Shown: in pieces, positions 8,400 through 43,600 of the stretch
How the letters are laid out: each line of letters begins with the position of its first letter
Numbering within the stretch: position 1 is the first letter of the stretch
Origin: Blastocystis sp. Blastoise
Taxonomy: Eukaryota; Protista; Bigyra: Opalinata
Assembly (NCBI GenBank): GCA_039096225.1
Contig: JBBPEB010000013.1
Coordinates: 1,550,001-1,614,000 of the forward strand
Reading direction: 5' to 3'
Length of the DNA stretch: 64,000 bases
Notes under the pieces: model-generated
Databases searched by the model: none
Seen by the model: only the letters and a program-made list of their open reading frames with translations
Told to the model about the DNA's origin: nothing
Program-made: the position numbers and the translations under genes

Positions 8400-11300
8400 T
8401 TAATTATCTTCACCTGATAAAGTGACTTCAACTTGAGAGTCATTGACAGGGAAACTTCCTACAATAGTATCATCAGAAACTTGACAACTATTAGTATTTT
8501 GTTTCATAACATAAACAGTATTAGCATTCTTAGTACCATAACCCTTAAGAGAATAAGATTTAGGAACATTCTTAATTTGAATAGTATGAGAACCATCAGA
8601 AGAAGGAGCTAATTCATTGACTTGAGTAGAAGATAATTGAATATAATTAATATTATAATATTTATCAGTACCTGTGAATTTCCAGCAAATAGACCAAGTA
8701 TTTTGAGATCCAGATTCTAAAGTAAATGTATCTACATAAGTAGATTCAGTTTCTTTAGTAATAGATCGAATACTTTGTTCAGAAGTAAACCCTTGAGCAT
8801 CACTAGCATCATCAGCACAAATAGGAGAATTATTATTATTATTATCTATCCATTTATAAGTATCCGTTTCTCCAATAAAAGTAGATTCAAAACGAATCAT
8901 CTTAGGAGTATTTAAAACAGCAAAGAATGATTTCTTATCATCACTATTAATAGTAATTTCTATAAATTTATATTCAGTAGAAAGTTGAATCCATTCTTCA
9001 GAATTAAATTTATAGCACATATGAATAGTTTCAGTAAGATCATTAATATGATTGAAAGTAAATATAATTTCTTTAATACTACTAACAGAAATAGTAGAAT
9101 CCATACCAAGAGGTTCATCATTACAAGTACCTGATGTCTTTACAAACTTAACACTATCCTTAGAAGTTATACCATGGCCAGCAACAGTATAAGTATATTG
9201 AGTTTCAGCAAAGAACATATTATTATTATTAAATGAATTAGTCATAGAAGATATATAATAAACAGAAAGAGTATTAATACGAATAATCTTATTGATATTA
9301 ACAAATTTATAACACATAGCAACAGAATTATAAGGTAATATAGATTGAATATTAAGAGTAGCTTTATTATTATTAACAATAGCACTAGTACCTTCTAATT
9401 CAACACATTCACTATTAGGATTTGATAAGAAAACAACATCATTATTATTAATATTCATACCAGTAAAAGTATATTCTTTAGGTTGATTAATAACAATAGT
9501 ATTAATAGAACCATGAGGAACAGACATAGTATTAATAGTATATATATCAAATACAAAATTAGTTTGAGGGTGATATACACTTTCATGGAAATTATAACAA
9601 ATCATATATTTAGATGATATAACATTAGATGATATAGTAAATATAGACATAGCTAAATCATTATTAACAATAGTAAGAGATAATATATCAGAATTATCAC
9701 TAAAGATAAGACCATTTGTACAATCAGATTGAGAATTATAAGGAACAATCTTAATAGTATCAGTAGCAGAAAGACCATAACCTTGAATATATAATGTATA
9801 AGATTGATTAATAAGTAATGATTTATCTTCAGAACCTACTTGATTTATGGAAACAGAAGAAATAGAACCAATAAATAAAACAAGATTATTATTAATTTCA
9901 CTAAGATCTATCCATTTTTCATTAGTAAATTGATAGCATACTCTATATTTAAGAACAGATTCAGATAAAACAAAAGTAAATTCATTATTAATAACATTTT
10001 GTTTAATATAAGTATCATCTTCTACAGTATCATCACAAGTACTAGTATAAGGTATATAATAAATCTTATCAGTAGATTGTATACCATAACCAGAAATTGT
10101 AGCTGTTACTTGTTCATTAGGTAAATAAACACTAGGATTAATAGAAGTAATATCATAAATACTTATTAAAGGCTGAGTTAATCCAAACCAAACTTCATTA
10201 TGTAATATACATATCTTAGCATATTCATTATTAATATTTTCTTTAAATGTAAATTCAATATATAAAAGATCATCAATAATTTGCATAGGAACAATAGAAG
10301 ATTGACTATTCATTAAACCAATAGGATTACTTTCACAAGAATCTGTAGATCTTACAAATTTAATATAACTATTAGAATAATCACCAACAACATTAAAACC
10401 AATACGTTTAACTAAACCAACAACAGCTGTATTAATATTACCATAACCATCTAAAGCAATAGCTTCAATATTATCAACAGACATAGTAAATTGAGTATAT
10501 TTCATCCATTTTTGTTCACTAAATTTATAACAAAGATAAGAATCACTAGCAGTAGTAAAAGTAATAGAAATAGAACTATAAGTAATAAAAGCACTAGCTA
10601 ATATTTGATCTTCAGTAGCAGTATCACATTCAGCACCTAAACGAATATACATAACACGATCACCAGAACGAATACCAGAACCAGAGAAAGAAATAACTTT
10701 AGGAACATTTAATATAGCATTAGAATTACCAGTAGTAGAAGTAACCTTATCTATAGTAGCAGCTAACATATAGATATTATCATATTTCTTCATAACATTT
10801 TCAGTAGCATAATAATAACAAAGATAATAATTATCATTATTAGTAGAACGAGTAAAATGAGCTTTAACTAATAAATTATCATCAAGAGTAAATATAGGAT
10901 AAATAGTAGAAGTAACTTCACAATTAGTATGTAAAGGAACATAAGATATTTGATCACCTCCAGAAAGACCAACAGATGAAGAGAAATCTAAGAAATTATC
11001 TTCACCAACAATACTAATTGTACTACTAGTAGCACTACGAGGTAAATTAACAGAAGAAACAGTTAATTGAATATTTTCATAATAAGTAGGAGTATAGGTA
11101 GTAAGAGTATTATCATAGAAATAATAACACATATAATAAGTAGATTGAGGTCTAGATGAAGAATAAGAGAAAGCATAACCTTTAGAAGTCTTATAAATAT
11201 CTAATTTAGAAATAGATGAATCATTACTACATTCATTAATATCACTAACAAATGAAACCTTATCACTTACAGAACAACCTGTACAAACAAGATTAAATTC

Positions 11301-14300
11301 TTTTTCAGTATTAGCAACAATTATAGTATTTGAACCAGTACTAGCAGTTATACCTTTAATACCAACAAGAGATATAGTCATACTAGGATAAGCATAGAAA
11401 GATTCAGTATTAAATTGATAACATAAGAATAATTCCATAGAATTCTTAGTACTACTCTTCTTATCTAAAGTATATATAGTCCAATCATAATTAACAGCAG
11501 TATATATAGTCATATCTTCATCACAAGATTCATAAACAAATTTAAATTTATTAATACCAGTAGAATTAGGATATTCAGTTGTATCAATCTTAATATTCTT
11601 AGAAGAATTAATACTAACAACATTATTACCATCTTGGAATTCAATACTATTAACAGAAGCAACAGCAATTTGAACTTCAGGATAATGTCTATAAATACCA
11701 CCTACATATCTATAACATAATGATAAATTCATTCCAGCATATTCTTTAGCAATAATAACATTAAATTGATTTATACCAGAAGTCTTACTACTAACAATAA
11801 TAGTAGATAAATCATTATTACAAGAAAGTGTATCAGGTATCCAATAAAGTTCATCTAATACATTCCAACCATTAACTTCTACAGTAAATAATTTACTTTG
11901 TTCAGCAATAACAATAGAATCAGAAGTAGTACTATCACTAGCATGAATATTAACAAAACTCTTTACATATCCATAAACAGCAGAAGCTTCAGTAACAACA
12001 GGAGTACCATAATAATAATATTTATCTTCAATACCATATTTAATACAGAATACATATTTATTAGAAGTACTAGTAGATTTAAAGAGTATAGTCTTCATAC
12101 GATCACAAGTATTAATATTAGTATTAGCATCTATATGACAACTAGTTTCATCACCAACTAATTCAATAGGATTATTTTCTATAGTAGCAGGATTAGAACA
12201 AGTATAATCACCTTCAGTAGTTAATAATAAAGTAATTGAAGTATCATAACCAACAGAAGCCTTTATATTAATATTAGAATTACTAATAATATTATCATGT
12301 CCAATAATAGAAGATAAACCATATACAGATATAGTAGCAGGAGTTGTACTATCTTTTACTAAAATAGAATGAAGAGGAATTATATCTTCATTTCTACATT
12401 TATAAGAAACAAAGACTTGACCACCTACATAAGTTCTAGGAACACTTAATGATACTTTATTAGAAAGAATAGAATATCCTATACACCAAGTAGATTCTTC
12501 ACAATTTACAGAAGTACTTAAATAGATTTCATCATTATCTATAATAGATTGACCTTCTAATGTATATACTTTAGCAATATCTCCTATAATAATATTAGTA
12601 TTACCTTCTTCAGCAGCAAAACTAGTAATAGAATGAATCATAGGAATCATAGAAGAAATAATAGAAGTCTTTTCAATATTATTATATTTAGCAGTTAAAC
12701 ACATATGATAAGAATCAACATTATTAAATTGAATAGTACCCTTATTATTGGTAAGAGGAACAAGAATAGAATTATCATTACTAGAACAATCTAAAGAAGT
12801 AGTAAATAATAAAGATATAGTTTCAATAGGATAAGATTCTGATGATATAATAGAAAGTTCAATAGGTTTTGATTGATAAATAATATAATCATTAGTCATA
12901 TGTTTCATTGTTTCTTCACTATTTATACCATAAACAGACATAGTAATAAGAGTTTCAGGTAATAAATAATATTGTTCAGGAATAAAAGCATAACAAACAC
13001 GAAGAGGAGTAGTATGAACAGTATTAAATATAGCATGCATTTGATTATTATTATCAACAACTAAAGTAGATTCCATACCAAATGGTTCTTCATCACAATT
13101 ATCTATAACAAATTTTACATGTTGACCTTCTTCAATAGATTGACTATTAAATGTTATTGTTTTTTCTACAAAAGTAGAAGCAGTAAAACAATCAGAATCA
13201 CTACAATTAATAGATTCAATATCAGAAATAATAAGATGTTGAGAAGTAAATTCATAAATTTCTTTATATTGAGAGAAATAATAACATAAATTAAAGTCAT
13301 ATCCTTTATTAATATCAAATGTATAAGTATTAGTAGCCATAACAATAGTATAATCATCAATTATTACATCACTACATTGTTGAGATTTAGAAACAAAAGT
13401 AAATTTATCATAATTATATATAGTATTAGGAGAAGCAACAATAGTAAGAGTAACTTGTTCATTATTCATTACATAAGAAGGATTATTATTAATAATAGCA
13501 GATAATAATACACGTTGAGATTTCATACCAAAATCATAAAGTTTAGTAGTATTACTATAAATATAACAAGGTCTAACAATACCATTAGAACTAGGTTGAG
13601 TAAAAGTAATAACAGCTTCTTTATTAATAACACTAGTAGGAGCATAAATAATATCAGAAGCACAAGAAGAAGTACTTGGAACAAAATATACTATATCATT
13701 TTCTTCACTTTGACCAAATGTAAGAGTATAAGATTTTTCAGCAACAAAATAATCTGGTAAACCACTAATAGAAATACTAAATACATTAAATGTTGCTAAG
13801 AAAATTTGAGTTTCTTTAGGAGTATAACCATTAGTAAATTGATAACATAAAGAAATAGAAGTTTCAGAACCAGGATATTGAATAACAATAGTATCTAAAT
13901 TCATAGGATGATATTGTTGAATAGCAGTAGTAGAACAATCAGTACCTTTAACTAAATAAGCAATATCATGAGTAGATAAACCATAACCAGAAACAGTTAT
14001 ATATTTATCACTATTTAATATAAGTTCATCAGCAACACCACTAATTTCATCAACTTGAATACTAACAATATCAATATATATATTACTATAACCAATAGTA
14101 TAAGTATTACGATAATTATAACAAACATAATAACGACCTATAGTAGATACCATAACATCAACATATTTATTATCAACAATAGTAAAAGGAAGAAGATTTC
14201 TACAAGAAGTAGTAGTAGATAATGATAATGAATCACTATTATCTAAATAATCACCATTAATTTCAAATCTCTTAGTATCTTCAACATATATAATATTATT

Positions 14301-17300
14301 CTTAGTAGTAGTAAGAGTAGATTTAAGACTATTAAGAGAAGCAACAGTAATAGATGTAGATATAATATCAATAGGAGCTTCACCTTTAAACATATAACAA
14401 GCATGATAAATACCAGCTTTATTAAATATATAATTAAGAGGAGTAACACCATAAGGTAAAGCATCAGTAACTGTACCTTGACATTTAACAGTAGAGAACC
14501 AGAAAGAATCAGAAGCATCCCAACCATTAACACCAACTAAATAAGCTTTAGGTTCATTAACTATAGCTAATTGTTCAATACCATCAACAGCAGTAACACT
14601 ATTAACTGAAACAACTCTCATAGTATATTCAGAATATAATATATAATTAGTCATTTCCATAGATTGTTCAATCTTATAAGCATAACATAAATTAAGAGGT
14701 ATACCAGTAGTAGTAGAAGCAGTAAAAGATAAAGAAATAATACTATCTTGAGAAGTAATAACATCATTCATATTAACAGGAGAAGAAGTACAATCATTTC
14801 CAAGAATATATTTTATACTAAATTCATAAATATCACGATTATTTACATATATAAATGATTTAGGATAATTAACATAAGCAGTCTTATCATTACCATAATT
14901 AGGAGGAGCAACCATAACATTAATTAAATCAACAATAAGTAGAGAATGAGAAGTATATTGAGCAATACCTTCATTAGCAAATTGATATTCAATATAAATA
15001 GAATCACCATCAATAGATCTAGGAACAGTAACTTCATAAGTATTTTTATTTACTTTATTAAGATTATTAGTAGCACCAATAAAAACAAGATTATCATTAT
15101 CAGAAATACCATTACCAGTAATACTAATAGTCTTCATTTGATCAGCTATAATATAATTCTTAAGAATATCTTCAGAAGTAATAGATTGAATAGAATAAAC
15201 ATCAAAAGCAGTATTATGGAAATATACTTGTTCATCTATAACAAAACAAGCATAAATCTTAGATTTATCAGTAGTTTCATTAGTAATAGAAACAGTAAAA
15301 ACTCCATTAATAATACTAATAGAATCAGTAATCTTATTAATATCATCACAAGATTCAGTATCAACAAAATATACAGAAGAAATAGATTCAACATGATCAC
15401 CAGTAATAGTAAATTGTTTAGGTAAATTAGAAACAATTACATAATTATTATAACCTTCAGTAGAAACAATAGTATTTACAGTAAAGATAGTAGTATAATA
15501 TAATTCATTATTATTAATATCTAAATGAATATGTTTATCTTCATCTTTAAATATATAACAAAGATAAGCCATAGGATAATTATAATTATTAAATGATACA
15601 GTAGCTTTATTATCAACAATATTAAATAATTCAACAGAATCCATATTTTGAATACTAGTACATTCATCAATAGAAGGAACAAAATAAATTTGATCTTCAT
15701 TTGAAATACCATAACCATTAAATGTTAAAGTAATAGTATCATGTTTTAAGACTATAGATGATTGAGAAGAAGTAACATTTTCAATACCATATACTTCAAA
15801 AGGAGTATTATAACTTACATATAAATGATCTTTATGTATTTCTTCAGCATTTGTAACAGAATAAGTAAATCCATAACAGAAATAAAGAGGAGAAGTATAT
15901 AAACTATTAAATTCTAATAGATGAATACCATTATCATATTCAAAAGTATGAATAATTTGAGTACATTCATTATTTTCACTAATAGCAACAATATCTTCAG
16001 ATAATAATCCAGTACCAGTAATAGTAATAGTCTTATTATTATTAATAAGTATTTTATTAAATATATGATCTTCTTGTTCAGCTTGTATATTTGTAATACC
16101 TTTAGATTGCATAAGATAAGGTTGACTACCAATAAATGTATTTTGATTATAACCTAATAAAACAAATTCTTTATTATTAAATTTATAACATAATTGATAA
16201 GGAGTATTAGAAGTCTTTTCAAAAGTAAATGTAGCAACACCATTTGTATCAACATTAATAAGAGTAGTTTCATCATTAAATCCTTCAGAAATACCTGAAC
16301 AATCAACAGCATTATTAGATACCCATTTAAATGAATCACCTTCAGTAGATACTAAAGAATAGAACTTAATAGTACTAGGTATACCAACAATACTAAATAT
16401 ATCTTCATAAGCTAATTTAAGTGAAGTAGAACCAATAGATAATTCCATAGAATCTATATATAAGACATCTAAAGTAATATGTAATTTTACTACTTCTTCA
16501 TTATCAAATTTATAACAAATAGCTACTTTAGTAGTATAAATATTAATATTTTGAGAATATTTATTATTTTCTAAAGCATATAAAGTCATAGAATTAGTAC
16601 AACTATCTCTATTATCAATAAGAACAACACGATCATTAGTATTTAAATTAGATCCAATAAATTCAATAGTAGAATCTTGAGAATAAACAACAGCATCATT
16701 ACGAGTACCAGGAGTAATAAGAAGACTCTTAACATAATATACATGTAAAATATCATCTGGAATAACAAATACATTTTCACCTACCATCTTATAACATACT
16801 TGATATTGATCAATATTAATTTCATTTAATGTAATTGTTACAGACATATCACTATTAACATTAGTATAAATAGCACGTTCACAACTATTATGAAGAGGAA
16901 CAACAGCTACTTGATCTTCAACACTAATATGAGTACCACTAATTGTAAATGTCTTAGGAACATTATATATAACATAATTAGAATTACCTTGAATAGCAAC
17001 TAAAGAATCAACTCTCTTAGAAGTAAATACATCAGATAATTTATACCATTGATTAGGTTGATATTTACTAAATTGATAACAAACATTCCAATAATCAGAA
17101 GTACTATAATCTAAAGTATAAGTAGCATATAAACTTTCAGCATTTTCTTCAACAGTAATAGAATCAATAGTATTAAAACCAACAGAATTACCATTACAAC
17201 CTTCATTTTCTAAAACAAATTTAATCTTATCACCAGCAGTAGCACCATTCATTAAAGTAACATCATCTAATAATCTTCTAAAACCAACGGATTTCTTAAC

Positions 17301-20300
17301 TAAAACAACAGTCTTAGTAACACCAACTAAAGCACTAAATCCTGAATAACCATCAGAACTAGTTAAAGTAGGTGTAGCAAGAGGAGTAAAACGTAAGTTT
17401 TCTAATATAATAGGTGCTTCTTTAACAGAATCTTTAACAAATACATAACATATATCATAAATATGACCAGCTTGAAGAGATGACATAGGATAAGTTATCT
17501 TTTTATTAACTATAGAAATAACAGATTCAGGTTCAATACATTCTTCACCAGATTCAATAATATAAGCATAATCATTATTAGAAACACCATTACCAACAAC
17601 ATTAAGAACAATAGTTTCATCATTAATAACTGGATAATTTATATTATAATTATTAGTACCTTCAAACGTATTAATACCATCAATACTAATAGAGAAATCA
17701 TTATACATCTTCCATGATTCACCACCAAATAAATAACATAATTTAAGAGATTGAGAAACACTTGTAGGATAAACAACAGTAACAGTATGATTTGTAATAA
17801 TAAATTCATAAGTAGATTCAGTACAAGAAGAAACAACAAATTTAATCTTATCACCATCAGTTATACTATTACCATAGAAAGTAAAAGTTTTTTCTTGACC
17901 AGCAACAACAGTAGTAGGATTACCTTCAGAAACAGTAATTTCAACAGGTAAAAGGCCTTTAATAGTAATAGGATAAAGAGGGAAATAATCACTATTAGGA
18001 TATTGATAACAAATATAATATTGTTTATCTAACATATCTTCATTAGTAAATATATAAGTAGCAGATAAATGATTATCAGAATTCATAATTACACTCTTTT
18101 CAGCAAATATTACATTACTATTACAATCTTCAGTTTCAACTATTTTAATCTTATCATTAATAGAAGCTAAACCTCCAGAAATAAGAAGTGTCTTTCTTTC
18201 ATTTAATATAAATACATTATTACTTGTTTCTTTACTATCTGTAAGAATAGGAGAATTTTCAACATGAATAGAGAAATTATCACCATCATATAATTTCCAT
18301 TCTTCACCTTCAAATTGATAACATAATTTATAATATTTAGAACCAGATTGTCTTAAAACAAACATAGCAATAAGATTATTATCAATATCTACATAAGGTT
18401 CAGTTAAAATAGTATTACTATCTTCACAATTAGTAGAAGTATTATCAATAAATTTAATACGATCACCTTCTTGAATACCATTACCAGTAAATTGAACATA
18501 AGATTGTTCATGAGTCTTAATATCACCAAGAATAGTACCTTGAACACCAGTCATACTATATACTTCATATATAGTAGTATTATATTCATTAAGTAATTGA
18601 ACTTTAGCACCATTAAATTGATAACATAAGAATACAGAAGAATCAATTACTTTATTAAATGTAATATCCATAGAATGATCAGTAATAGAAGTAATATCAG
18701 CAATATGTTCTTCATCTTCACAACTAGAAATAACAAGATAAGCATTATCATTCATAGAACTGCCAATACTATCTATACTAAATGTCTTAGACATATGATT
18801 AACAGCAGTAATAACATCATTATCTAAAGTAATATCATTAAATTGATATACAGCAATACTAATAAGATTATCACCATGAGGACCAAGTAAAATAGGTTGT
18901 TCATTATTAAATAAGAAACATATTTGATAAGTATCAATAGAAGGAGTCATAAAAGTAATAATAGCTTCATTATTTTCAAGTGTATAAGGACCATTAACAA
19001 TAGTACCAGAACAATCTATAGAATCAGAACTAACAAAATAGAAAGATCCATTAATAGAATCAGGAGTAGTAGTAAAATGAAGTAATTTAGGTTGATCAAC
19101 TACAGCAACAGAATTTATTAAATTATTTTCTGATTCAATAGAAAGAATACTATATACAGTATAAACTTCAGAAAGAAGAACATAAGATTCACTACCAAAT
19201 TTATAACAAGCTTGAATACTAGCAATCTTACTATTAATTTGTATATTAATAGAATCTAAAGAAAGTATATCAAGATAATTATCATTATTATTTAATAAAA
19301 TATCCATATTATCACAAGTAGATCCTTCAGGAATAAATTTAATCTTATCATTAATAGCAAATCCATTACCAATAACTTGATAATCATGAGATTGGCTAAC
19401 AACAAATTTATTAATAGATTCATTATTCATAGTTAAACCAGTAAATGTCTTAGTAGTAATAGAATATAAAGAATAAGGTTTAATAGTAGCATCACTAAAT
19501 TGATAACAGAATAAGAAAGTACCTTGATAAATACTATTAATATTAAGTTCATAATAAAGACCATCTTCATTAGAAACAACAGAAGTAGTATAAATTTTCT
19601 TATCACTTTCACAAGTAATATCATCAACATAATAAACTATATCACTATTTGTTAATCCAGTACCAGTTACATAAATCTTCTTAGGATTACCAATAACAAA
19701 AGTATTAATTGAACCATCAGTAGTAGTAAGACTATTAACATTTAAGTCACCTTCTGTTTCTTGTAAGAAACGTTTCATCATCTTAGACATCTTAAATATA
19801 GTATTTAATTTATTACTATTAATAGTATATTGAGAATATTTATTTATAATACCATTAGAATATTGATAACAAAGAACAAACTCAGTTATACCTGTATATT
19901 CAGTAATAAAAGTAAATGTACCTTGTTTATTAGAATTATATTCAAATATATTATTATTAGAATTAACAATAGGTAACATAGCTTTAGTATTAGAACATTC
20001 TTCTTTAGAAGATATAAACCAGAATTTACTATTTTCAAGATTATTACCATAAATAGAAATAGTTTTTTCTTGAATACTTAATTCATTAAGAGGAATATTA
20101 ACACCTTCCATAGAAATAAATTGAGAAATAATTATAGGTTTAGATTGTAATGTAATTATACCAACATTCTTAATATTAGCACAAATATATACAGAAGAAG
20201 CACCTTGTTTAGGAATAATAGACATAGTATTACTAAGAATTCTCATAGTATATGTATTATCAGAACCAGAAATCATAAGTTTATACATATCATTATCAAA

Positions 20301-23300
20301 ATTACATTGTTTATTATTAAGATAGAATACATCATCATTATGAATATTCTTTAAAGTATTAAATATAATAGGAGTAGATATACCAGCAATCATACTTTCA
20401 ATAGGTTCCATATTAATTTCAATAATATTCATAGTAATAGAAGAATGAAGAGTCCAATCAATAGTATTAAGAGATAAACATAATGAATATTCATTAGAAG
20501 AATTCTCATTAATCTTATGAATAGTATAAATAGAATCTAATTCACTCTTTGATAAAATAGATTTATTATCAAATAATAAAGTAGAAGTAGATGAACAAGT
20601 TTGACCATTTTCAACAAATTTAATATAATATTGTTTAGGTATTTCAGGTTTAATAGTAAGAATAAGTTTAGAAGCTTGATTATTTTGAGCTCTATTAGGT
20701 ATAATAGTATCGACTTGATAATTAGTTAATTGAATATCCATCTTATTCATTATATCATCATTATATTGATAACATAAATTCATTTCTTCTTGAGATTCTA
20801 TTATAGGTTCAATAGTAGAATCATTATCATTAATAGAGGATTCAGAAACATTATCAGCAATATAACTATCTTTAAGTTGTACCATAATATTATATAATTT
20901 AGTATTAGAATGTTCAGTAAATTGAATACCTTTAGTAGATTTAGCATAATAATGATTATCAAGAGAAGAAATCATAGAACCACTAATACCTTGTTCAGAA
21001 GGAGAATGAGTAGCAAAATGAATAAGAGAATCTCTATTACAATTCTTATTATTTGAAGAAGTAAAAGCATATAAATCATTCTTTTGTATATTATGACTAG
21101 ATAATTTAATAGAGAAAGAATCATTAATAGAAGTATAAGTAGCAGCATTCATATTAACCATAGTAATAGAAGGAATATAAGATAATAATTTATATTGTTC
21201 ATCTTTAGATGATTTATAACAATAAGATAATTTAGTATTTTCAGGTAAATTAAGAGATAAAGTAAATTGTTTCTTTTCATCAATAGAAGAAACATAAACA
21301 AAATCTTGTTCATTATTACAATTATCTGATTGAGTAAGAGCAATAGAATCTTGATTAGATATATCAATACCTTCTATAATAAATGTCTTAGGAATAGAAT
21401 TAACAAGAATAGTATTACTACCTTCAATAGCTTCAATCTTAGAAATACCACGAACAGCTAATTGGAAGTTATTCATAAAGAATGATTCTACAGTAGATAA
21501 AGTATTAAACATATAACAAAGATGATATAAACCAGCTTGAGAAGGATTAAATTTAAAAGCATATTGATTCTTATTAATTTCTTGAATAGAAAGAGGATTT
21601 TCAATATTCTTACAATCTTCTACATTAACAACAGGAACAACTGTATCAAGTTTACTAATATGATAACCATTAATAAATATATCATAACTAGAATTCATAT
21701 CATAAGTAGTATCTTGTAAACGTCTACCATTATCATTATTACCATTAAGAGTAGCAACTGTCATTTGTATAGAAGAATACATCTTATAAGGTTCATCAAC
21801 AAATCTATAACATAAAACATAAGTATTAGTAGTAACATGATCAAAAGTAACTATTGCATGACCACCTTCATCTACATTAATATCAGTCATTCCATTAGAA
21901 ACAAGAGCTTCATTAGCATTATCACAAGAAGTAGAAGTAGAAGGAACATAACGAATAAAATCACCTAAATGAATACCATAACCAGTAAATTGAATTTGTT
22001 TTTCAACACCAGCAACAGCAATAGAACTATCACTTGAATTAATATCATATACTTCTACTTGATATTTAGTAACTAATGAGAATTGTTCATCAGATCCATA
22101 TTTATAACATAAAGAATAATAACCATTAGAAGCAACAGTAAACATAATATTCTCAAAAATAACTTCAGTCATATCTGAGAAATAACTAACTGAATAAATA
22201 GAAGTTTCAAGAACAATATCAGCATCACAATCATTTCCAGAAACAAATTTAAGTTGATCATTAGTAGATAAACCATAACCAGAAATAATAAGATTTTCAG
22301 GAACATTAGCAACATAAACAAGAGAAGAACCTTTATTACTATCAATAGTATCAATACCTATAACAGTAGTAGTAATATCTTGATAGAAAACAAAAGGTTC
22401 ATCAGCAAATCTATAACAAAGAGAGAATTTATTATTAGTAGCAGTCTTTGAAGTTTCAAGGAATGTAATAGTAGATTTACCATTAGAATCAACAGCACTA
22501 GTAAATGTAGCAATAGAAGCAGTTGATAATTTATTAATAATAGGAGTACTAGATACTTCAACAATAGATCCTTCAGTATTTATAGCAATTTCACTATTAA
22601 TAAAACCACTATTTTCAAGAGAAGATTCAGAAATAGCAACAGCATCACTATTACAATCTGTACCCTTAACCCATTTTACTTGATCTAAAGAAGAACCTGA
22701 TGAAATACCAAAACCAGTAAATATATAAACATCAGTATTATAAGCAGAACTCTTACTAGAAGTACAAGTAGGACAATTTTCAGAAACAACAGCTTTAATT
22801 TCATTTACATGAATATCTAAAGAAGCTAACCATTTTTCACTAGCAAACTTATAACATAATACATAAGCATCATTAGAACCATTATCTAACATAAATGTAG
22901 CTTCAAAAGTATCATCTAATGTAACAACAGGAACTAAGAAATTATTACTATTACAATTAGTCTTTGAAATAGTGACTTGATCACCAACAGTAACACCATT
23001 ATTCTTATTACTATTAAATATATATGTCTTAGGATATTTAGCAACAATAGTATTAATATTACCAGTCATAGAAGTAACTTCATCTAAAGATAACACAGTT
23101 AAATATACAGAAGTAGGAATATAAGAGGATAAACTAGAAGGATGATAACACATTAATAAAGGTTCACTAGAAGATTCTAATAATAAGAAATCAATATAAT
23201 ATTTATCTTCTTCAACATTTTGATTAACTTCAACAGAATCAGTAACAATAAATTCACCATTAACTTGAATATTAGCACCAGATACAGAACAATCATTACC

Positions 23301-26300
23301 ACTAACAAACTTTAAAGAATCACCTAAAGTAATATTACCATAAACTTCAAATTTCTTAAATTGATTCTTAACAATAATACCATCAGCACCTTCTTGACTA
23401 TCATAAGCTTTAAGAGCAATAATAGAACGAACATATAACTTCTTTCTAGGATAATACATCATTTCTTCATTACCAAATGTATAACAAAGAGAGAACCAAC
23501 CAGCATCAACAAATTTAACTTGAGACATACCATTAATAACACTAGCTTCATATACTATATCATTAGAACCATCTACTTTCATACCTAAAGCATCTTCTAA
23601 ATTAGAACAATCTTCACCACCAATAAAACGGAATTTATCATTAACATTAGATTCACTAACACCATTACCAGTAAATTTAATAGTACTATCAGCATTAAGA
23701 ATAAAAACTTGATTATCTTCAAGAGTACTAAATGTATCAATAGAAAATACCTTAAAAGTAAATTGAGGATATTTAATATATCCTTCATTCTTAAATTGAT
23801 AACAAATAGTAATAGAAGAATAAGTAGCTTCAAAATTGAAAATAATTTGATTATTTTCATCTAAATTAGAAACATTAGTATGATTAAAGTTAGTAATAGC
23901 ATATTCTACTCTACAAGTATCATCAGAATGAATAAAGAAAACAGTATCTTCAGAAGAAATACCATTACCAGTAAATTGAATAGGAGAATCAGTACCAGCA
24001 ATAACTACATTAGGTAAATCATTAGGATAATCAGTATAACTAGTAACATCAGTTAAATCCCAAATATTAACATTAATAGAAGGATATAATAAATAAGGTT
24101 CATCACCAAATTTATAACATAAATTATATTGATGAGCAGTTAAACCAGAAGCAAATTCAAAACGAATTGTATTATCAGCAGCAACATACATAGAATCTCT
24201 TCCTGTATGAGTCTTCTGTAAAGCACTAAGTATAGGAGTACTATCACTCTTTACAGTAAAATGATCTTCAGTTTCTTGTTTATTGACTTCTAATAAAGAA
24301 AGATTATCACTATTTTCAATATAATCAGCATTATTTAATGTAGCTATATTAATATTACAATCATTACCACTAACCCATCTAGCCATATCTAAAGTCTTAT
24401 CAGATATACCTAAACCATTTACTTTAAATTGTTTCTTTGTACCAACAATAGCAATATTACTTTCTAAAGCAGAATTAATAGAATCAAAACTAGTTAATTC
24501 ATATACTTTAAGAGTATAACTAGAATATAATTTATAATGTTCATTAGAGAATTGATAACATAAAACTAATTCTTCAGTAAGACCATGAGCAAAAGAAATA
24601 GGAGCTTCATGATTACTATTAATACTAAGAGGACCATAAATAGCTTGATCTATATTACATTCAGATATACTCTTAGGCATATAGAAGAATTTATCATTTT
24701 CATGAATACCAATACCATTAAAAGTAAATACTTTAGGATAACCAGCTACAACTACATCATTAGAACCAAAATCAGAATCAATACTATCAATATCACCTAA
24801 AGTAACACTAATAGAAGTCTTTACCCAATAATCTAAATCTTTAAATTTATAACAAACTTGAAGATTACCTACAAGAGAATTCTTGAAATAAAGATTAGCT
24901 TTAAGATCAGAAGTAATAGGGAATGTTCTATCTTCATAAGGACTATCACATTCAGTATCAGTAGAACCATTTACTAAACATTGAGAATCAGTATTTGTCA
25001 TAGGAATAAAACGAATACTATCTTCAGCACTAATACCATTACCAAGTATATTAACTTCTTCAGAAATATCAGCTACAAGTACATTATATAAACCACTAGT
25101 AGAAGTAGATAAACCATTAAATGACTTAATTTCAATAGTAATAGTAGCATAAGAAGCAATATTATCAGTACTATAAGCATAACAAAGAGAATAAGTACCA
25201 GCAACAGCTTGAGAATCAATAACAATATCAGAACCAATATGAGTATCATCAATAGCATAAACACTATTTAAATTATCTTCAGTAGAAAGTTTTAAGTAAT
25301 AATCAGTTTCAGTACATTGATGTCCACTTAAAACAAAAGCAACTTTATCATTTCTTTCTTCATCATAATTATAAGCATTTAATATAAATTTTGTCATACA
25401 TCCAGCAACAACCATAGAAGGAGTAAGACTATCAACTTTAAGAGATTCAATAATAAATTGATAATCTTTAGGAGTTTCATTACCAAAAGTATAAGTTAAA
25501 GAATATTGTCCTAATTTATTAAATTTAATAGTAGAAGAATATTCTCCTTGAATAACATCAATAGGAGTTTGAATAGTTTCTTTAGTATTAATCCAAGAAG
25601 CATTATCAGTATCAACATAATTAGCATACCAATGACCAGTATAAATAATCTTTGTAGATTGACCATTATAAGTGACAGTAGAAGGAGTAACAGCAGTAAT
25701 ATAAACGACATTAAGAACAATAGAAGTCTTTAAATAACCTTCAACACCATTGAAATGATAACATAAAGAAAGAGGTTGTTCATGTTCATCAAAAGTATAT
25801 ATAGCTTGAATAGAAGTAAGATCATTATTAATCATAATATCTTTTACAGAAGGAGCATAAGTGACATCAGCAGTACATTCCATAGATGTATCAATCCATT
25901 TATAAGTATCTTCATTAGTAAAACCATAACCAGATAAAGTAAATGATTTAGGAACAGTAGCTACAATATAATCATTACTCATTGTATCAATAACAGAAGT
26001 AAAAGTACTAATAAAAGATACTTTAATAACAATATTAGATAATAAAATATAATCAATTTGATCTTTAGATTTATAACATAAAGACCAATTATTACCACCA
26101 AATCCAGTTTGGAATTGAATAGTAATCATATTATCAGTAATTACAACAGAATCAGATCCATCCATAAATTTAGCATAAGCATCAGGATTTGTATTACAAT
26201 CTTCACCAGACATTAAGAAACGAATAGAACCTTGTTCAAAATTACCAACACCTTGAATAGAAGCAGTAGATTCAACACCAGCAATAAAAGAAGAAGGAGT

Positions 26301-29300
26301 TAATGATTTTATATAAGGAGTTTCAATAAGCATATCTTTATATAATTTCCAAGGATGTTCACCAAATTTATAACAAATAGCAGCAGAAGCAGTAGAAGAA
26401 GTAATATGAACTCTAGCTACATATTGGTTATTAATAGATTGAACAATAGCCATAGGATTATTACCTGTTTGATCTTTATTGACAGTAACAGATTGAACAG
26501 AAGTACTAAAAGAAGTACATTTATATTGTTTAGGACAAGCTTTAGCTTCTTTAGATTCAATAATATCAAAAGAATCAGAAGTAACAGTAGGAATAACAAA
26601 TACACGTTCAGTATCAGTTTGAATACCAGAATTATCAATTAAATAACCATAAATATCGAAGTAATAAGCAACATTATTTTCATCGATAATTTCAATACGA
26701 TGGCCAATATCAATATTACCAAAAGTACAAGATCCCTTAATTTCTAATATATTATACATAGCTTCATAATGGAAAGAAGCATTAGAACAAGTAGGTCTAT
26801 AACACATAGAACATTCTTCAGAAGGTAATATGACAGATAAAGCATTATGAGAACCAGCAGGAGATAAAATAGTAATACCAAGAATAGTATTCCATTTACC
26901 AGAAGGTTGTTGAGCAGTTTCAAAAGTAACAATAGCATCATCAATAGAACTTAAATGTTCAATCTTTAATCTAGCATCAACAAGAGTATCCTGAATATCA
27001 ATAGGAATAGTTTGACTAATACCATCAGAAACAATAAAAGAACCAGTAGTAGGTTCTTCATTAAATTCAAGTATAATAGTTTGTTTTTCTTGTTTACCTG
27101 TAGTAGATTGAGAATAATAATTCCAACAATCACTATCAGAAGTAGATTCAGAATCAACTAAGAATATCTTATCACCTTCTTTAATAGATTGACCATTAAG
27201 ATGAAGATCAATAATAGAATCAGCAGCAGCTAAAGAAGGAGAAACACTATCTAAATGAGCTACTTCATACGATAAATTATCATATAACTTAGGACTAGTA
27301 GTCATATCAGGATTACTTAAATCATAACAAACTTTAACAGAATTCTTAGAATTAGTATTAATATAACTAGCATGAGAAGAATCACCTACAGAGAAAATAG
27401 TACTTTCATCATCACAAGTATTTTCAACTAAACGAACAGTATTAGCAGTAGAAGAAAGAGTAGAACAAGCACTACCAATAAATTCAACTTCTGATAAAAT
27501 AGTAAATTCAGTATTACCCCAATTACGTGTAATAATAAAACGGAAATAACGAGAAGCAACAGGAGTATTAAAAGGTATTTTCTTCCATATACCAGATTTA
27601 GTTTCATCTTGATCTAAATTATAAAGAATAGTTTCTGGAATATCTTTCCAAGGAGCATTAGGTTTAAAAGCACAATCTTCAGTATTACAACTATCTAAAT
27701 ATTGTAATTTAATATCACGAGCATTACTAAAAGTATAAAAACCATTAATAAAAATATTAAATTGAGAGAGAGTATGACAACTACCGAAATCATAAATAAT
27801 CCAATTATTTAATCCCCAAGTATATCCAGCATTTGAGAAAACAAATACCTTATCATTAGAATTACCATCAACAGTAACAGAAGGATAAGGAGAACCAGGA
27901 TATTTATTATGATAATATTTACTTAATTCAGGACAAGCATCAGTATTACAGATACCTCCAGTAAGATCAGTATTAGGAGTTAAAGTCTTATAATCAACAT
28001 TAGGTTGATAAATACCAAAACCATTGAATCTCATATAATAATTCATACCTTCAACAAGAATATTATCTGTAGTACTAGTTTGAGTAGAAACAACACCAGC
28101 TAAAACAACATCAAAAGCAGTAGTAGTATAAAGAGAAGAAGTAGCATGAATATAATAACATAAATGATATACACCAGGATCAGCAAAAGTAATATGACCT
28201 AACCAAGTTTGACCAAAAGAGAAACTAGAATCAATAGTAGTTTCCATAGTAACAGGAAGACGAGTTTGACAAAGATCATCAAGAGAATAAGAAATTTCAT
28301 CTTGAAGTTCAAAACCAATACCACTTAATTGAATAGTATAAGGAATATCTTCAATAGCATCAACAAAAGGCATAGCTATATTATCTTGAATAACATTCAC
28401 TTGACGTATACCACTAAGAATGAAATGTTTATTAGGTACTTTAAAACCATGAATACCACCAAAATAATATAAGAGATTCAAAGGATTTGAATTATAAGTA
28501 GCACCCATAGTAAGTTTGAAAGAGATCATAGTATTATTAGCAGAAAGAAGAGTGGAGACACTATCAACAACAGTAAAAGAATCATCAGCGAAAGATATCT
28601 TATCTTGATTCGTGAATCCATAACCAGTAATAGTAAAGATCATAGGTACACTCATATATAAATAAGAAGCATCAACTTCAATAGCTTTAATAGAGAAAGT
28701 TTGTTCAATATCAATACAGATATTTTGGAAATAATAAACGAAATGAAGATCATTATAAGGAGTAGTAAAAGTAAATACAGCAGTAGCTTTAGTATCAGTA
28801 AATGTAGAAATAGTAGAAGAAGCATAAATATCACCTATTTCATCACAAGAGCCACTAACAAGTTTTAAGGAATCACCCTTACCAAAACCAATACCATGAA
28901 TATATACTTCAGTTTCATCACCAACAACACCAAGAGGTATATTATCTACAAATTCAAGAGATTCAATAGAAGCAGTCTTAATAGTAAATGTAGGTTGAAG
29001 AAGAATAGCATTATTATTAGGGAATACTAAGCAAATAGAAGCATCTTGATAAGATGATTGTAAAACAAGAAGAGGACCAAGATTTGCAGAATATTCATTA
29101 ATAGCTACAGGACTAACAATAGTATTTTCAAAATTGCATTGAGCAGAACTAGTAAGACCAGATTTAAATAAACCAAGTTTCATAGAAGTAGGAAGTAATC
29201 CATCAATTTGAACAGTTTGAATACCACCAGCAGGTCCACTTAAAGGAGAAATAGTATTAATAGAATAAATAGGAATAGTATTATCAGTTTTATCGTTATT

Positions 29301-30749
29301 AATACAAAGAGAAGCAGATTGATGGCCATAGACAAAGTTACTAAGTACCATATGTTGATTATTACTAACACAAGGATAGAAAGGAATAGTAGCTACACTT
29401 TGAAGAGAATCCATAATATAAACAGAACTAGGTAATAAATTACATTCAGTAAAGCAAATATGACCTGCAGGAACATTAACATCAATAATACGATATCTAA
29501 TATTAATATATTCAGGAATAGTATTAGTAAAAAGAATATTCCAAAGATTACCATATTTAGTTTCTTTAGCAAATTCATAAGAATCTACAAGCACTTGATA
29601 TCCATATTTCTTAAATAAAGCAGCAACTTCAGAAGCAGAAACAGTATAGCTCAATAAATCAGAATGATGATCAATTTCTAATACAAAAGAACTACTCTGT
29701 AACGTATATTGCTTACTATCTTCATCAGCAAAACCAAAAGTCCAACGAGAAGCTACAACTGAATCAGATTTAGAACAACCAGATTCAGAATCTACCCAAC
29801 GAATCTGATCATTTTCAGTAAGAGAAGCTTCATTAAGTTTATAACCATGAATTTGAAATTCAACTAATTCAGTCTTAATAGGATTACCCCAATTACTTTG
29901 AACGACAATCTTAAAATAACGTCCATAAATAGGAGTAACAGTATTCTTGTCAGAAAAGACTTTCCAACCAGCATCTTGATTTTCAGCTTCATAATTAATC
30001 CATTCAGACCAAGGACCCATAATAGAATCTAAGGAATAATAGACAGAAAGAAGACGAGCAGAAGCAGGAGAATTATTTACATAAACTCTAGCATCATCAG
30101 CAGAAATAATAGTTTGAGCATCGAAAGCAACCCAATTCTTTAAATTATTGCAACGAGCACAAAGAGAATCAGCACAAGAAGGAGAAGCAGAATTAGCATC
30201 ACTACAAGTGTTATCATCACCTGCAGTACAACCAAAACACTTACGACCACCTTCAAGTTGATTATAAGCTGATATAGTCTCATTTAAATAAGTAAAAGTT
30301 TGGCAATTTTCATCACCAAGAATACAGCCGTCATTAAAGGAAGGATGAGACCATTCAAATTTGGTAGTTTCACTACCATCAATAATAGAGAAAACACTTC
30401 CTTGAGCATAAGGAATAGGACGACCGGATTTAATGTTTGATGACCAACCCCATTGTCTAGTATTTTCAGAAATAGAGCCCCAAGATTCACGTTCAGTTTC
30501 AGTAGGGAGCCAAGCAGGAGTATAAGTAGTAGTATCACACTTGTAAGCATCATATCCAAAGAAGTAAGTTGAACTATGTCCAACAAAGGCATCTTCAGAC
30601 GCAGCCAGAGCAAGCATAAAAAGAGTTCTATAGATGAATAAACATAAATAATCAATTAATTAAAAATAAGTAGAAAATATGTTGAAAAAAAGATAAAATA
30701 TATAAATATAGAAGATTTTGACTACTTACAAAAATAATATATTACTCAT
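8400..30749 (-). CDS. Giant secreted repeat protein (~7,415 aa): signal peptide, ~60 ~100-aa two-Cys repeats, 2 discoidin/galactose-binding-like domains
   Basis: Exon 30749-30730 (ATG) splices via GTAAGT...CTATAG to a 22.2-kb exon 30627-8400, giving MSNILFLTLFMLALAASEDA. The repeat consensus is about xAxVxxxKxFxxxGxGIxxxDxxxFVxxxxC...FxxxxxxxLCYxFxxExxxxY. Confidence 0.9.
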
Positions 30750-40623: not shown

Positions 40624-43600
40624 ATGAGATTTGCTATTTTTCTTTTCTTGATTTATTTATGTATGCATATATTCATATAATTAACTGCTATTATAATATA
40701 TATATGAAAATAAAAAATTTATCATTTTTTCTAATTTACTTTTTTTATATAGGTGTAAGTCAAAGTGTTACTTGCACTAGTACTCAAACAAAGGTTACTT
40801 TAGTTCGTACTTTTAAGTCGAATTGTGCTGAAGAAAGTTTTCAAATTTGGGAAGGTTCTTCATCTACAGGTACTTTAATTACTTCTGATAATGGTATCAG
40901 TAAGGAAAATACTGTAAAGAATTATGAGTTATGTTTAAATCCTACCATGCATACATTTGTTGCTCTTGATGGGTATGAATTTTATTATATTTATTATCTT
41001 ACTAAAAATTGAATATATATAGTGATAATAATGGCTGGGAAAATGGATCCACATTCTTAATAAAGACTCCTGCTGGTGTTATTTTAATTCAAGGAACTTT
41101 AGATAGATATACTAGAGCTGAATGGTCTTTTTATCGTATATATTTATTTTAATAAAGATAAATAAAAAATAAATAATTCTATTCTATAGCTTCTTATACT
41201 ATTTCTTCTACTTCTCAATGGAAATATACATCTACTGCTCAAAGTGGTACTTCTTGGACTACTGCTGCTTTTAGTGATGCTTCTTGGACCAGTTATGCTC
41301 CCGGAAGTTTCCCTGCTCCTTCTACTACAACTCGTTATTTCCGTGCTACAGGATCTATTCCTGCTGATAAAACTAATTTCGTTTCTTTTGAAGTTGGTGT
41401 TCTTACTAGAGAAGGTGTTGCTATTTATGTAAATGGTCAAGAAGTTTATAGAAGAAATCTTGCTGAGTATATATTAATTTATATTATATATTTATTAATT
41501 TATTAATATATATTTATTAATTTATTAATATATATTTATTAATATATTAATATATATTTATTAATATATTAATATATATTTATTAATTTATTAATATATA
41601 GTTCTGCTACTTCTTCTACTACTGCTTCAACTACCGATGCTAATAGTGCTTATAGAAGGTATTTCTTCTTTATTTTTATTATCTACTTTTATTTTTAATA
41701 ATAATAATAATTTCCTTATTTCACTTCTCTATATCTATAGAGCTACTGGTCCTATTAGTTCATTAACTGGAACTAGTGTTACTGTTGCTGTTGAAATTCA
41801 CGGATCGGGATCTAATCCTGCTTCTGAAGACTTTAAAGGTTTCTTTATTGTTTTCTATGGTCGTATATATATTTATTATATATAATATGTGATAGTAAAA
41901 CTATAATAATAGAATATATAATATTTCGATTTGTCTTTCTATAGCTTGTAATATTCGTTCTAAGGATGGTACTGTTGCTTCTAATCACGGTAATGTTGGT
42001 AATGCTCAAGAAACTATGAATTCCGCCTTTGATAATGATATTCAAACTTTATGGTATTTCGGTAATGTTCCTGTTAATCTTGATTATACATTTAATGATG
42101 GAAGGTATATATATATATTTTTTTTAGTTTATTATATATTCATTCTATTATTCTAATTAATTATATATTCATTCTATTGTTTTAATTATTTTATTATTTA
42201 TATTATTATTATTTTATAATTATATATATATCATCTATTCTTATAGAAAAGAATGGATTAATGCTTATGAAATTACTACTGGTTGGCAATGGGATGAAAG
42301 AAGACCTAAGAATTGGAAGGTTTCTGCTAGTAATGATGGTACTAATTGGATATTATTAGATTATAGAACTGATATGAGATTTGATGCTAGAAGAGATACA
42401 AAGAGATTTTATTTAAATACAAATAATATGAGATTTAATACTTATAGATGGGAAGTTTGTATGTTTTTAAATATATCATTAGTTATTCTCATTATTCATT
42501 TTTTTTATAATTATTATATATTTCTATTTTTAATTATTCTTTCTTTAGTATCTGTTCAAGCTAATAGTGATGGTGAAATAGCCGAATTCGCTTGGGTTGC
42601 TTGTAATCAACCTATTCAAACTCCTCAATTAGCTTATCCTCAATCTTCTTATACTCTTGTTACAAATCTTGATACTGTTTATTTATATCCTACTCAAAAT
42701 GGTTTTACTTCATTCCAAATTAATCCTTCACTTCCTGCTGGTCTTTCTATGGATGCTAATAGTGGTACTATTAAAGGAAAAGCTACTGTAGATACTTCTG
42801 CTACTATTTATACTATTACTGCTACTCATCATACTAATGTTCAAAGTCAAACTACTATTACTCTTACTACTTATACTTGTGCTTCTCCTAAATTAAGAGT
42901 TGATATTTATAAACGAACTAATAAAGATTCTTATGATGGTTGGGAACAATATATAGTAAAGAATGCTGCTGGTACTATTGTTTGGCAATATGAAGTTACT
43001 GCTTCTGATTATACAGATACTATTAATATTAAACATTATTTCTGTTGGGAACCTGGTGTATATACTATTACAGGTAATGCTCATACTTCTTCGGGTTGGG
43101 CTGGTACTTCTTATTTAGCTGTTGATCTTTATGGAAGAGGTTCTGCTTATTGTATTTCTAGATTCCATCTTTATAAAAAACAATCTGAAACTTATAAAGT
43201 GAATATTGCTTATGAAACTGAAACTTCATTTAAATCTATGTTAACTTCTACTTCTATACCTACTGGTTGGTATTCTCAAAGTTTTAATGATGCTGCTTGG
43301 CCTGCTTATACTGCTAGTGCTTCTACTCCTGCTTCTTCTCATATATGGTTCTTTAGACAAACCTTTACTGTTGCTTCTAGAACTGGTGCTCAATCCTATG
43401 AATATAGAATTAATGTTCGTTCTGGTTCTATTGTTTATTTAGATGGTGTAGAAATTCATCGTATTAATGTTGCTACTGGTGCTCTTACGATGGCTTCTTA
43501 TGCTACTGATGGAAGAAATAATGATGAAAGTGCTCAATGGAGAGTTATTACTGGAAAAATGTCTCAATTATCTGCTGGTACTCATGTTTTTGCTACTGCT

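Follow-up and report, generated by a model that had tools for sequence, protein, structure and literature searches.

The window analysed here is a 64,000-nucleotide stretch of contig JBBPEB010000013.1 of Blastocystis sp. Blastoise, and its minus strand carries a giant gene, set in surroundings of 24-30% G+C, whose product a word search names as hypothetical protein WA158_004086 [Blastocystis sp. Blastoise] (P0001 below). The cysteines of this protein are spaced periodically, about 100 residues apart, and a scaffold profile built from 51 of its body units finds about 65 copies of a two-Cys repeat of about 105 amino acids (aa). The repeat consensus reads ...sInsIts..nvvvan.pktItFnGnGIs.nDkIkFv.sseC, then about 35 aa, then ssyslCYkF...ItltV. 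Every non-repeat module is confined to the first 1,450 aa, and the gaps of more than 40 aa between profile matches are all found there (1-258, 295-489, 838-1053 and 1194-1379). Within this N-terminal head two successive scaffold repeats appear to be split, their halves standing on either side of an inserted discoidin-like domain (discoidin 2) and of a pair of small modules (2b), respectively. The gene, the two split repeats and the repeats around them are as follows (HMM, hidden Markov model).

8400-30617, minus strand: giant open reading frame, a 7,405-codon exon in one open frame
28107..29267, minus strand: four divergent, uninterrupted scaffold repeats, aa 451-837 (HMM matches)
27975..28106, minus strand: left part of the discoidin 2 host repeat, strands A-B, ending FNGFGI, aa 838-881 (hhalign, FxGxGI)
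27459..27974, minus strand: discoidin 2, F5/8 type C-like, aa 882-1053 (Pfam F5_F8_type_C at 26 bits, and DUF5000)
27243..27458, minus strand: right part of the discoidin 2 host repeat, strands C-G with both Cys, aa 1054-1125 (HMM, hhalign)
27102..27242, minus strand: left part of the 2b host repeat, strands A-C as far as the first Cys, C1164, aa 1126-1172 (hhalign)
26814..27101, minus strand: module 2b-1, aa 1173-1268 (QTIILEF..GSFIVS..IEHL..KWNT), without a Pfam family
26466..26813, minus strand: module 2b-2, a Cys-rich unit of about 115 aa, aa 1269-1384, kept in relatives P0002 and P0003
26292..26465, minus strand: right part of the 2b host repeat, strands E-G with AICYKF and C1415, aa 1385-1442 (hhalign, excision score)
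8403..26291, minus strand: rod of about 57 further scaffold repeats without large inserts, aa 1443-7405 (profile matches)

The family to which the protein belongs is narrow: an exhaustive search of 1.84 billion representatives, with aa 251-1450 as query, yielded 10 proteins at E <= 0.001. P0002 is a collinear orthologue of 7,348 aa and 48% identity, and P0003-P0005, at about 27% identity, are collinear as well, being fragments which jointly keep both discoidins and both small-module inserts of the head (discoidin 1, 2a, discoidin 2 and 2b). P0008, a protein of 4,292 aa encoded by an intronless gene of a GC-rich eukaryote (Logan contig), combines a signal peptide with PKD domains, a membrane span on the C-terminal side and a tail of about 330 aa, the layout of a type-I membrane protein. 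Of all holders of the nested unit this protein is the most distant; its gene (L009:1226-14104, 12.9 kb) adjoins a TMEM131-like gene on a contig from run SRR23287145.

An earlier note on this DNA, all of whose quoted motifs and coordinates are present in the sequence, had claimed that the non-repeat domains of the head interrupt repeats rather than lie between them. This was assessed through hhalign comparisons of the insert flanks, taken from an orthologue alignment (A3), with the scaffold profile. For discoidin 2, aa 838-884 on the left align with scaffold columns 2-29 at P 1.2e-3 and aa 1052-1125 on the right with columns 20-102 at P 1e-4; in the protein itself the profile match restarts directly after the discoidin at position 35 and continues through 107 (aa 1054-1125). 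The FxGxGI motif that closes the left flank is present in all five orthologues. The interruption is likewise kept in P0008, where a discoidin in one repeat lies between ...LEGFGVGG and DRDRVKLVRVEDTC, and a Cys-rich insert precedes ...LKLCFGF.

The 2b host bears out the further claim that a module is inserted after the first Cys with the second half of the repeat resuming beyond it. Its left flank (aa 1120-1172) matches columns 2-51 (P 1.4e-5) and its right flank (aa 1385-1442) columns 55-103 (P 9.5e-8). In-silico excision of 2b leaves one continuous repeat scoring 46.3 bits, approximately the sum of the two halves (15.5 + 29.9). The two conserved cysteines of the host, C1164 and the LCY Cys C1415, stand on opposite sides of the insert, and both are kept in P0001, P0002, P0003 and P0008. 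In P0008 the corresponding repeat, which follows the one split by the discoidin, has taken up, after its first Cys and ahead of ...LQLCYQ, a Cys-rich stretch as well as two small modules, and its halves match columns 2-48 (P 1.7e-5) and 61-102 (P 3.7e-4). For comparison, 21 control windows of 50 aa taken inside the inserts all gave P values of at least 0.09. Both inserts, discoidin 2 and 2b, therefore appear to be flanked by the N- and C-portions of one beta-sandwich domain, as judged from the alignments.

A plainer arrangement would have the discoidins and small modules strung like beads between complete domains, with the flanking half-repeats serving as linkers or surviving as degenerate repeats. 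Divergence lends it something, since the N-terminal repeats are very divergent and the intact repeat at aa 450-556, once halved, itself fails the hhalign test (P 0.2-0.3); for the same reason, a negative hhalign result in the N-terminal region means little. Discoidin 1, moreover, could simply be N-terminal, following the signal peptide. Nevertheless, discoidin 2 and 2b each have flanks that correspond to complementary parts of the profile and adjoin no complete repeat, the repeat obtained by excising 2b scores as one full repeat, and the FxGxGI and DSDC.../...CYKF motifs persist at 27% identity and in P0008. We consider the beaded arrangement unlikely.

The positions of the inserts are consistent. 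Discoidins occur only at the B-C turn, after the FxGxGI that closes strand B and before the D-x-I-x-F-V...C strand, and the small modules characterised by a GSF motif, like the Cys-rich units, occur only just after the first Cys. P0008 uses the same two insertion points as the giant protein. The junction from discoidin into strand C is common to discoidin 1, discoidin 2 and both discoidins of P0008, and is absent from P0007 and P0011, proteins with tandem discoidins only. The second of the two loops is also a hot spot for insertion and deletion in ordinary repeats: inserts at profile position 53 are found in 24 of 56 body repeats and at position 59 in 31 of 56, reaching up to 22 aa. The earlier note's picture of a scaffold with two permissive loops agrees with this, with discoidins in one and GSF-type modules in the other. 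Its suggestion that the modules are interchangeable fares less well, as the paralogues keep discoidin 1 and 2a and no swap of module type at one loop was seen save for the Cys-rich and tandem GSF inserts of P0008.

That the B-C turn lies within a domain depends on where the repeat unit begins and ends, and in a tandem array several phasings are possible from sequence alone. If the unit ran from strand C to the next strand B, the discoidins would fall at domain borders and only 2a and 2b would be nested; the strand-C segment directly after discoidin 1, with no clear A-B strands before it, is what such a shifted phase would give. The ends of natural arrays indicate another unit. The EukProt protein P0010 has an 11-repeat array that starts at profile position 4 and stops after strand G, where a Ser/Ala/Pro linker of low complexity takes over. 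Among 56 body repeats of the giant protein, the sole long insert (45 aa) between ordinary repeats falls at profile position 109. From the array ends and this insert it follows that the unit extends from strand A to strand G, so the turn after FxGxGI is inside the domain. The AlphaFold2 secondary structure of the repeat at aa 451-547 also begins with strand A, and a shifted phase seems decidedly unlikely.

The cysteines of discoidin 2 itself vary in concert: C890 and C895 at its start, C947 inside and C1051 at its end occur together in P0001 and P0002 and are jointly missing in P0003-P0005. The P0008 discoidin also has Cys at its start and end. Canonical F5/8 C domains carry a disulfide joining their N- and C-termini, with which the terminal Cys of discoidin 2 are compatible. 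The pattern may reflect optional disulfides, one of them clamping both termini of the inserted domain.

The scaffold repeat itself resists assignment. Pfam run on the whole protein finds only Sad1_UNC (aa 203-258) and F5/8 type C (aa 916-1038), and run on 19 single repeats at E values up to 10 it gives no credible match and no TIG. A profile search of the PDB with the repeat alignment gave no significant match, the best being a SAG protein at E 0.96. One Atlas row in which 41% of members have TIG shows a feature similarity of 0.89 to the repeat, to be read as a lead only. We take the scaffold motif (...sIts.., t-I-t-f-G-x-G-I, D-x-I-x-F-V...C) to resemble the first half of IPT/TIG, from which the repeat differs in that neither the whole protein nor any of the 19 repeats matches PF01833 and no PDB sequence match is significant.

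The extreme N-terminus holds a further discoidin and a further small module, arranged as follows.

30546..30596, minus strand: mature N-terminal stretch, aa 8-24 (DAFVGHSSTYFFG...) (hhalign, columns 4-17)
29844..30545, minus strand: discoidin 1, aa 25-258, galactose-binding-domain-like, with a Cys-rich sub-insert of about 70 aa at aa 92-158 (Pfam, AlphaFold2)
29721..29843, minus strand: C-strand part of the first host repeat, aa 259-299 (ENDQIRWVDSESGC...) (scaffold HMM positions 29-60)
29520..29720, minus strand: module 2a, aa 300-366, a helix and a beta-beta-alpha-beta-beta unit (SFVLEID...LWNILF) (AlphaFold2; predicted local distance difference test score, pLDDT, 63-80)
29268..29519, minus strand: beta-rich stretch, aa 367-450, with the motifs HICFTEC, FYPC and SASLCI (AlphaFold2 strands), presumed to be the remainder of the first host domain

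The identity of discoidin 1 was examined with an AlphaFold2 model of aa 1-560 (model mcd1b6c1fef8a, 7-row alignment) that is of moderate confidence and for which pLDDT is 63 overall and 64-87 in the discoidin core. Structural comparison with VIA-align over model residues of about 30-262 gave Z 13.5 with 7nsn_B, a GH92-associated domain, 13.1 with SUN2 and 12.8 with CBM32. Across 50 such domains the Z scores run from 13.5 to 10, with about 125-135 aligned residues and root mean square deviations of 2.5-3.5. Foldseek and the Atlas agree with a discoidin-type fold, and Sad1_UNC scores 28.4 bits on a 1,500-aa piece (cut-off 22) and 18.9 bits on aa 1-260 alone. The model thus points to an eight-stranded jelly-roll of the CBM32/SUN/F5/8 C-like kind. 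To that family discoidin 1 is linked by its fold, along with the Sad1_UNC and F5_F8_type_C matches to the protein; it departs from it in its Cys-rich sub-insert, and the F5_F8_type_C scores of 26.0 and 21.7 both fall below the Pfam cut-off of 28.2. Discoidins 1 and 2 are 27% identical to each other.

The right flank of discoidin 1, ENDQIRWVDSESGC, is scaffold-like, scoring 15.5 bits, and hhalign places aa 256-298 on columns 13-68 (P 0.003). On its left only about 20 residues separate the discoidin from the signal peptide. AlphaFold2 draws a strand at aa 16-20 with a pLDDT of about 50-70, and this mature N-terminal stretch may supply a strand to the first host domain. The structural match lists for the model are filled by discoidin-type domains and are uninformative on the host. 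Beta strands are predicted on both sides of the beta-beta-alpha-beta-beta unit of 2a. HICFTEC (aa 388) and SASLCI (aa 438) were each tried as the resumed F strand of the first host and rejected, the joins adding at most 2.5 bits. C416 and C438 are invariant in seven homologues.

Modules 2a and 2b had been proposed to be of one type. The direct comparison of the two reaches only P 0.04, while 2a matches the second small module of P0008 (2125-2215) with P 6e-6 and 2b-1 is collinear with P0008 2010-2115 (P 0.018), so that a common module type is likely on the alignments. Pfam at E values up to 5-10 returned no credible family for 2a, 2b or the Cys-rich unit. The likeness to stramenopile giant proteins that the earlier note gave for this module has one lead, the ESM Atlas features of 2b-1, which stand at 0.96 to unnamed eukaryotic clusters in which diatoms are commonest. 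It is not confirmed by alignment: when the P0008 modules were used in a word search for giant relatives, P0008 itself was the sole protein retrieved.

Within the Blastoise genome the scaffold repeat is found in three genes only, all inside 120 kb of contig 16. The two paralogues keep the head of discoidin 1 and 2a at 40% identity. Genome searches found no relatives of discoidin 2 or 2b outside the giant gene; the search with discoidin 2 and its flanks and that with 2b each returned the giant gene alone. The paralogues, of about 11,500 codons each, lie outside the window, head to head and mirror-symmetric at G000:C16:1460246-1545358 (L004, L005, L007, L008), with identical match scores and coordinate sums of about 3,005,604, one copy being split into two frames, 3,063 and 8,483 aa long. 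Either an inverted duplication of about 35 kb or an assembly artefact would account for the symmetry.

The start of the giant gene lies upstream of the 7,405-codon exon.

30730..30749, minus strand: end of the upstream exon with the start codon (ATG 30749-30747; spliced contig, frame reading)
30628..30729, minus strand: intron 1, 102 nt, GT..AG (spliced contig from run X1; CT..AC on the plus strand)

In the spliced contig from run X1, position 30627 is joined to 30730, and the two exons read jointly, by eye, encode a hydrophobic signal peptide, ...LALAAS, directly before EDAFVGH. The homologues P0004, P0005 and P0006 have signal peptides at the matching place. So, too, paralogue A has a signal-peptide-like hydrophobic stretch there, its start codon presumably being on an upstream exon. 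Contigs from a polyA RNA library map to the large exon at 28729-29097 and 29992-30224. The annotated start of P0001 is the internal ATG at 30617, while the ATG of the upstream exon (30749) supplies the first half of the signal peptide. The public model also splices out, as an intron, a 30-nt in-frame GT..AG stretch at 17510-17539 that encodes the conserved first Cys of one repeat, and which is either a real mini-intron or an annotation error.

Elsewhere in the window an intact HSP70 gene occupies 2113-4119 on the minus strand (Pfam HSP70, 892 bits). A neighbouring open reading frame of 1,282 aa at 42374-46222 on the plus strand encodes three Ig-like domains of the He_PIG type together with a domain like F5/8 type C that scores below the Pfam cut-off, making it another discoidin-bearing gene of surface type.

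Taken together, these observations are best explained by a secreted, probably cell-surface, fibrillar Blastocystis protein in which about 65 tandem two-Cys beta-sandwich repeats would form a long rod, with the first 1,450 or so residues as its head. At least two scaffold repeats of the head would be split domains. In one of them the turn from strand B, with its FxGxGI, to strand C would bear a discoidin/CBM32-like domain; in the next an insert of about 210 aa, made up of a small beta-beta-alpha-beta-beta module and a Cys-rich unit, would directly follow the first conserved Cys. We expect the two halves of a split repeat to co-fold, so that the inserted domain buds sideways off the rod, and the discoidin and small module at the extreme N-terminus probably follow a similar, more degenerate arrangement. 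Like lectin-bearing adhesins, the protein would probably serve to bind glycans or other ligands that belong to bacteria, mucus or neighbouring cells. We put the probability of this explanation as a whole, from secreted rod through split-domain head to ligand-binding role, at about 0.7. The analysis directly supports the domain identities, the split-repeat pattern in the sequence together with its conservation, the signal peptide and a spliced transcript; assembly of the half-repeats in three dimensions, the type of ligand, the anchoring and the orientation we infer. Judging from their fold, the discoidins may bind glycans, and the head may sit at the distal tip, as the earlier note had envisaged, given its N-terminal position and the signal peptide together with a C-terminal anchor seen in P0008 only.

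Several observations weigh against this explanation. The significance of the left flank of discoidin 2 is modest, with 6.9 bits when scored alone and the P value of 1.2e-3 given above. At the N-terminus, the stretch of about 20 aa before discoidin 1 falls in the expected register for strands A'-B, columns 4-17, without reaching significance (P 0.16). Of the 50 structural matches listed for the model, three to CBM32 domains (3ggl_A, 7jnb_A and 7jfs_A) start at model residue 13-15, so that the N-terminal strand may pack on discoidin 1 itself. Discoidin 1 has a scaffold-like flank on its right side and no clear half-repeat on its left, so that its proposed nesting within a repeat is in doubt. Beyond 2a, aa 366-405 and 400-452 show no significant match to the second half of the repeat (P 0.4-0.6, with a gain of 2.5 bits at best), and the claim that the repeat resumes there is not supported. 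The split-repeat proposal of the earlier note is accordingly confirmed in part, for the discoidin 2 and 2b hosts as far as alignment can tell.

At the other end of the protein, the frame terminates within a scaffold repeat (profile positions 2-73), and a membrane anchor was sought in the giant gene and not found. A donor-like AG|GTGAAG (GT 8413-8412) lies four codons before the end of the 7,405-codon frame, and one or more C-terminal exons, and any anchor, are probably absent from the gene model. The orthologue model, P0002, stops at this point too.

The AlphaFold2 model of aa 745-1445 (5-row alignment) has a mean pLDDT of 45 and is unusable, a further point on the adverse side. Its residues 307-389, which make up the right half of the discoidin 2 host, lack secondary structure and have a pLDDT of 20-27. 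Such an unfolded half would suit a history in which the inserts broke two repeats and left behind evolutionary scars, the surviving halves now acting as linkers or being absorbed into the inserted domains. The model is, however, poor throughout, and both flanks are constrained, with invariant or motif-keeping columns across the five orthologues and P0008, the Cys pair that spans 2b included. We regard scarring as very unlikely.

The closest parallel to the split-domain head is bacterial. In RTX adhesins, Ig-like domains amid the extender repeats are split by domains that bind carbohydrates or other ligands and that project from them, and the split-domain criterion has been used to find ligand-binding domains in these proteins (PMC12077191); the split-domain source cited there is Graham et al. 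2024 (Proteins 92:933, as cited in PMC12077191). The Blastocystis protein resembles the group of AhLap, FrhA and MpIBP (PMC12077191, PMC10865825) in being a giant rod of tandem Ig-like extender repeats. It also shares ligand-binding domains, putative here, that are flanked by the N- and C-portions of one Ig-like domain and predicted to bud from it, and the clustering of inserts near one end, with several split domains separated by ordinary extender repeats. It differs in being encoded by a eukaryotic gene that has introns and specifies a signal peptide, and in that its head is N-terminal where theirs is C-terminal. Its scaffold, which has two conserved Cys and matches no Pfam family, is unrelated in sequence, and its inserts are discoidin-like domains and small beta-beta-alpha-beta-beta modules. 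Pfam on the 7,405 aa gives no RTX repeats, type I secretion signal, retention domain or BIg; the Blastocystis protein is therefore not a member of the RTX adhesin family. On present evidence it would work by analogy with their split-domain display.

Elsewhere, integrin beta subunits and Gram-positive pilus adhesins such as RrgA carry a ligand-binding domain in a loop of a stalk beta-sandwich domain. Their insert is vWA-like and their stalk short, differing in this from the Blastocystis protein, and the Pfam scans made here show no sequence relation. Papers on PKHD1L1 yielded no precedent for nested IPT domains, and a literature search turned up no account of a Blastocystis protein of this kind. 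The design is thus known from giant bacterial adhesins, and with no description found for a protist, the present protein would be a new eukaryotic variant of it.

For Blastocystis the interest lies in the surface coat, which a review calls 'intriguing but poorly studied' and for which it names no protein component (PMC6115916). The coat is filamentous and carbohydrate-bearing, sometimes has bacteria attached, and possibly has a role in adhesion and protection (PMC6115916). As a filamentous, bacteria-binding coat with no named protein (PMC6115916), it makes the giant protein a reasonable candidate component: a secreted rod of 7,400 residues with lectin-like domains at its free end would be a concrete one. 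A bolder and rather doubtful proposal is that Blastocystis and a few other protists evolved split-domain display independently of bacteria, and that the three clustered giant genes encode coat fibrils which catch bacteria or host glycans by means of budding discoidins. Neither the scaffold repeat nor the small beta-beta-alpha-beta-beta module has a Pfam family. Were the present case borne out, split-domain display would have arisen in eukaryotes on an unrelated scaffold, and the break-off and resumption of a repeat profile would be a criterion for finding binding modules in other giant protist proteins.

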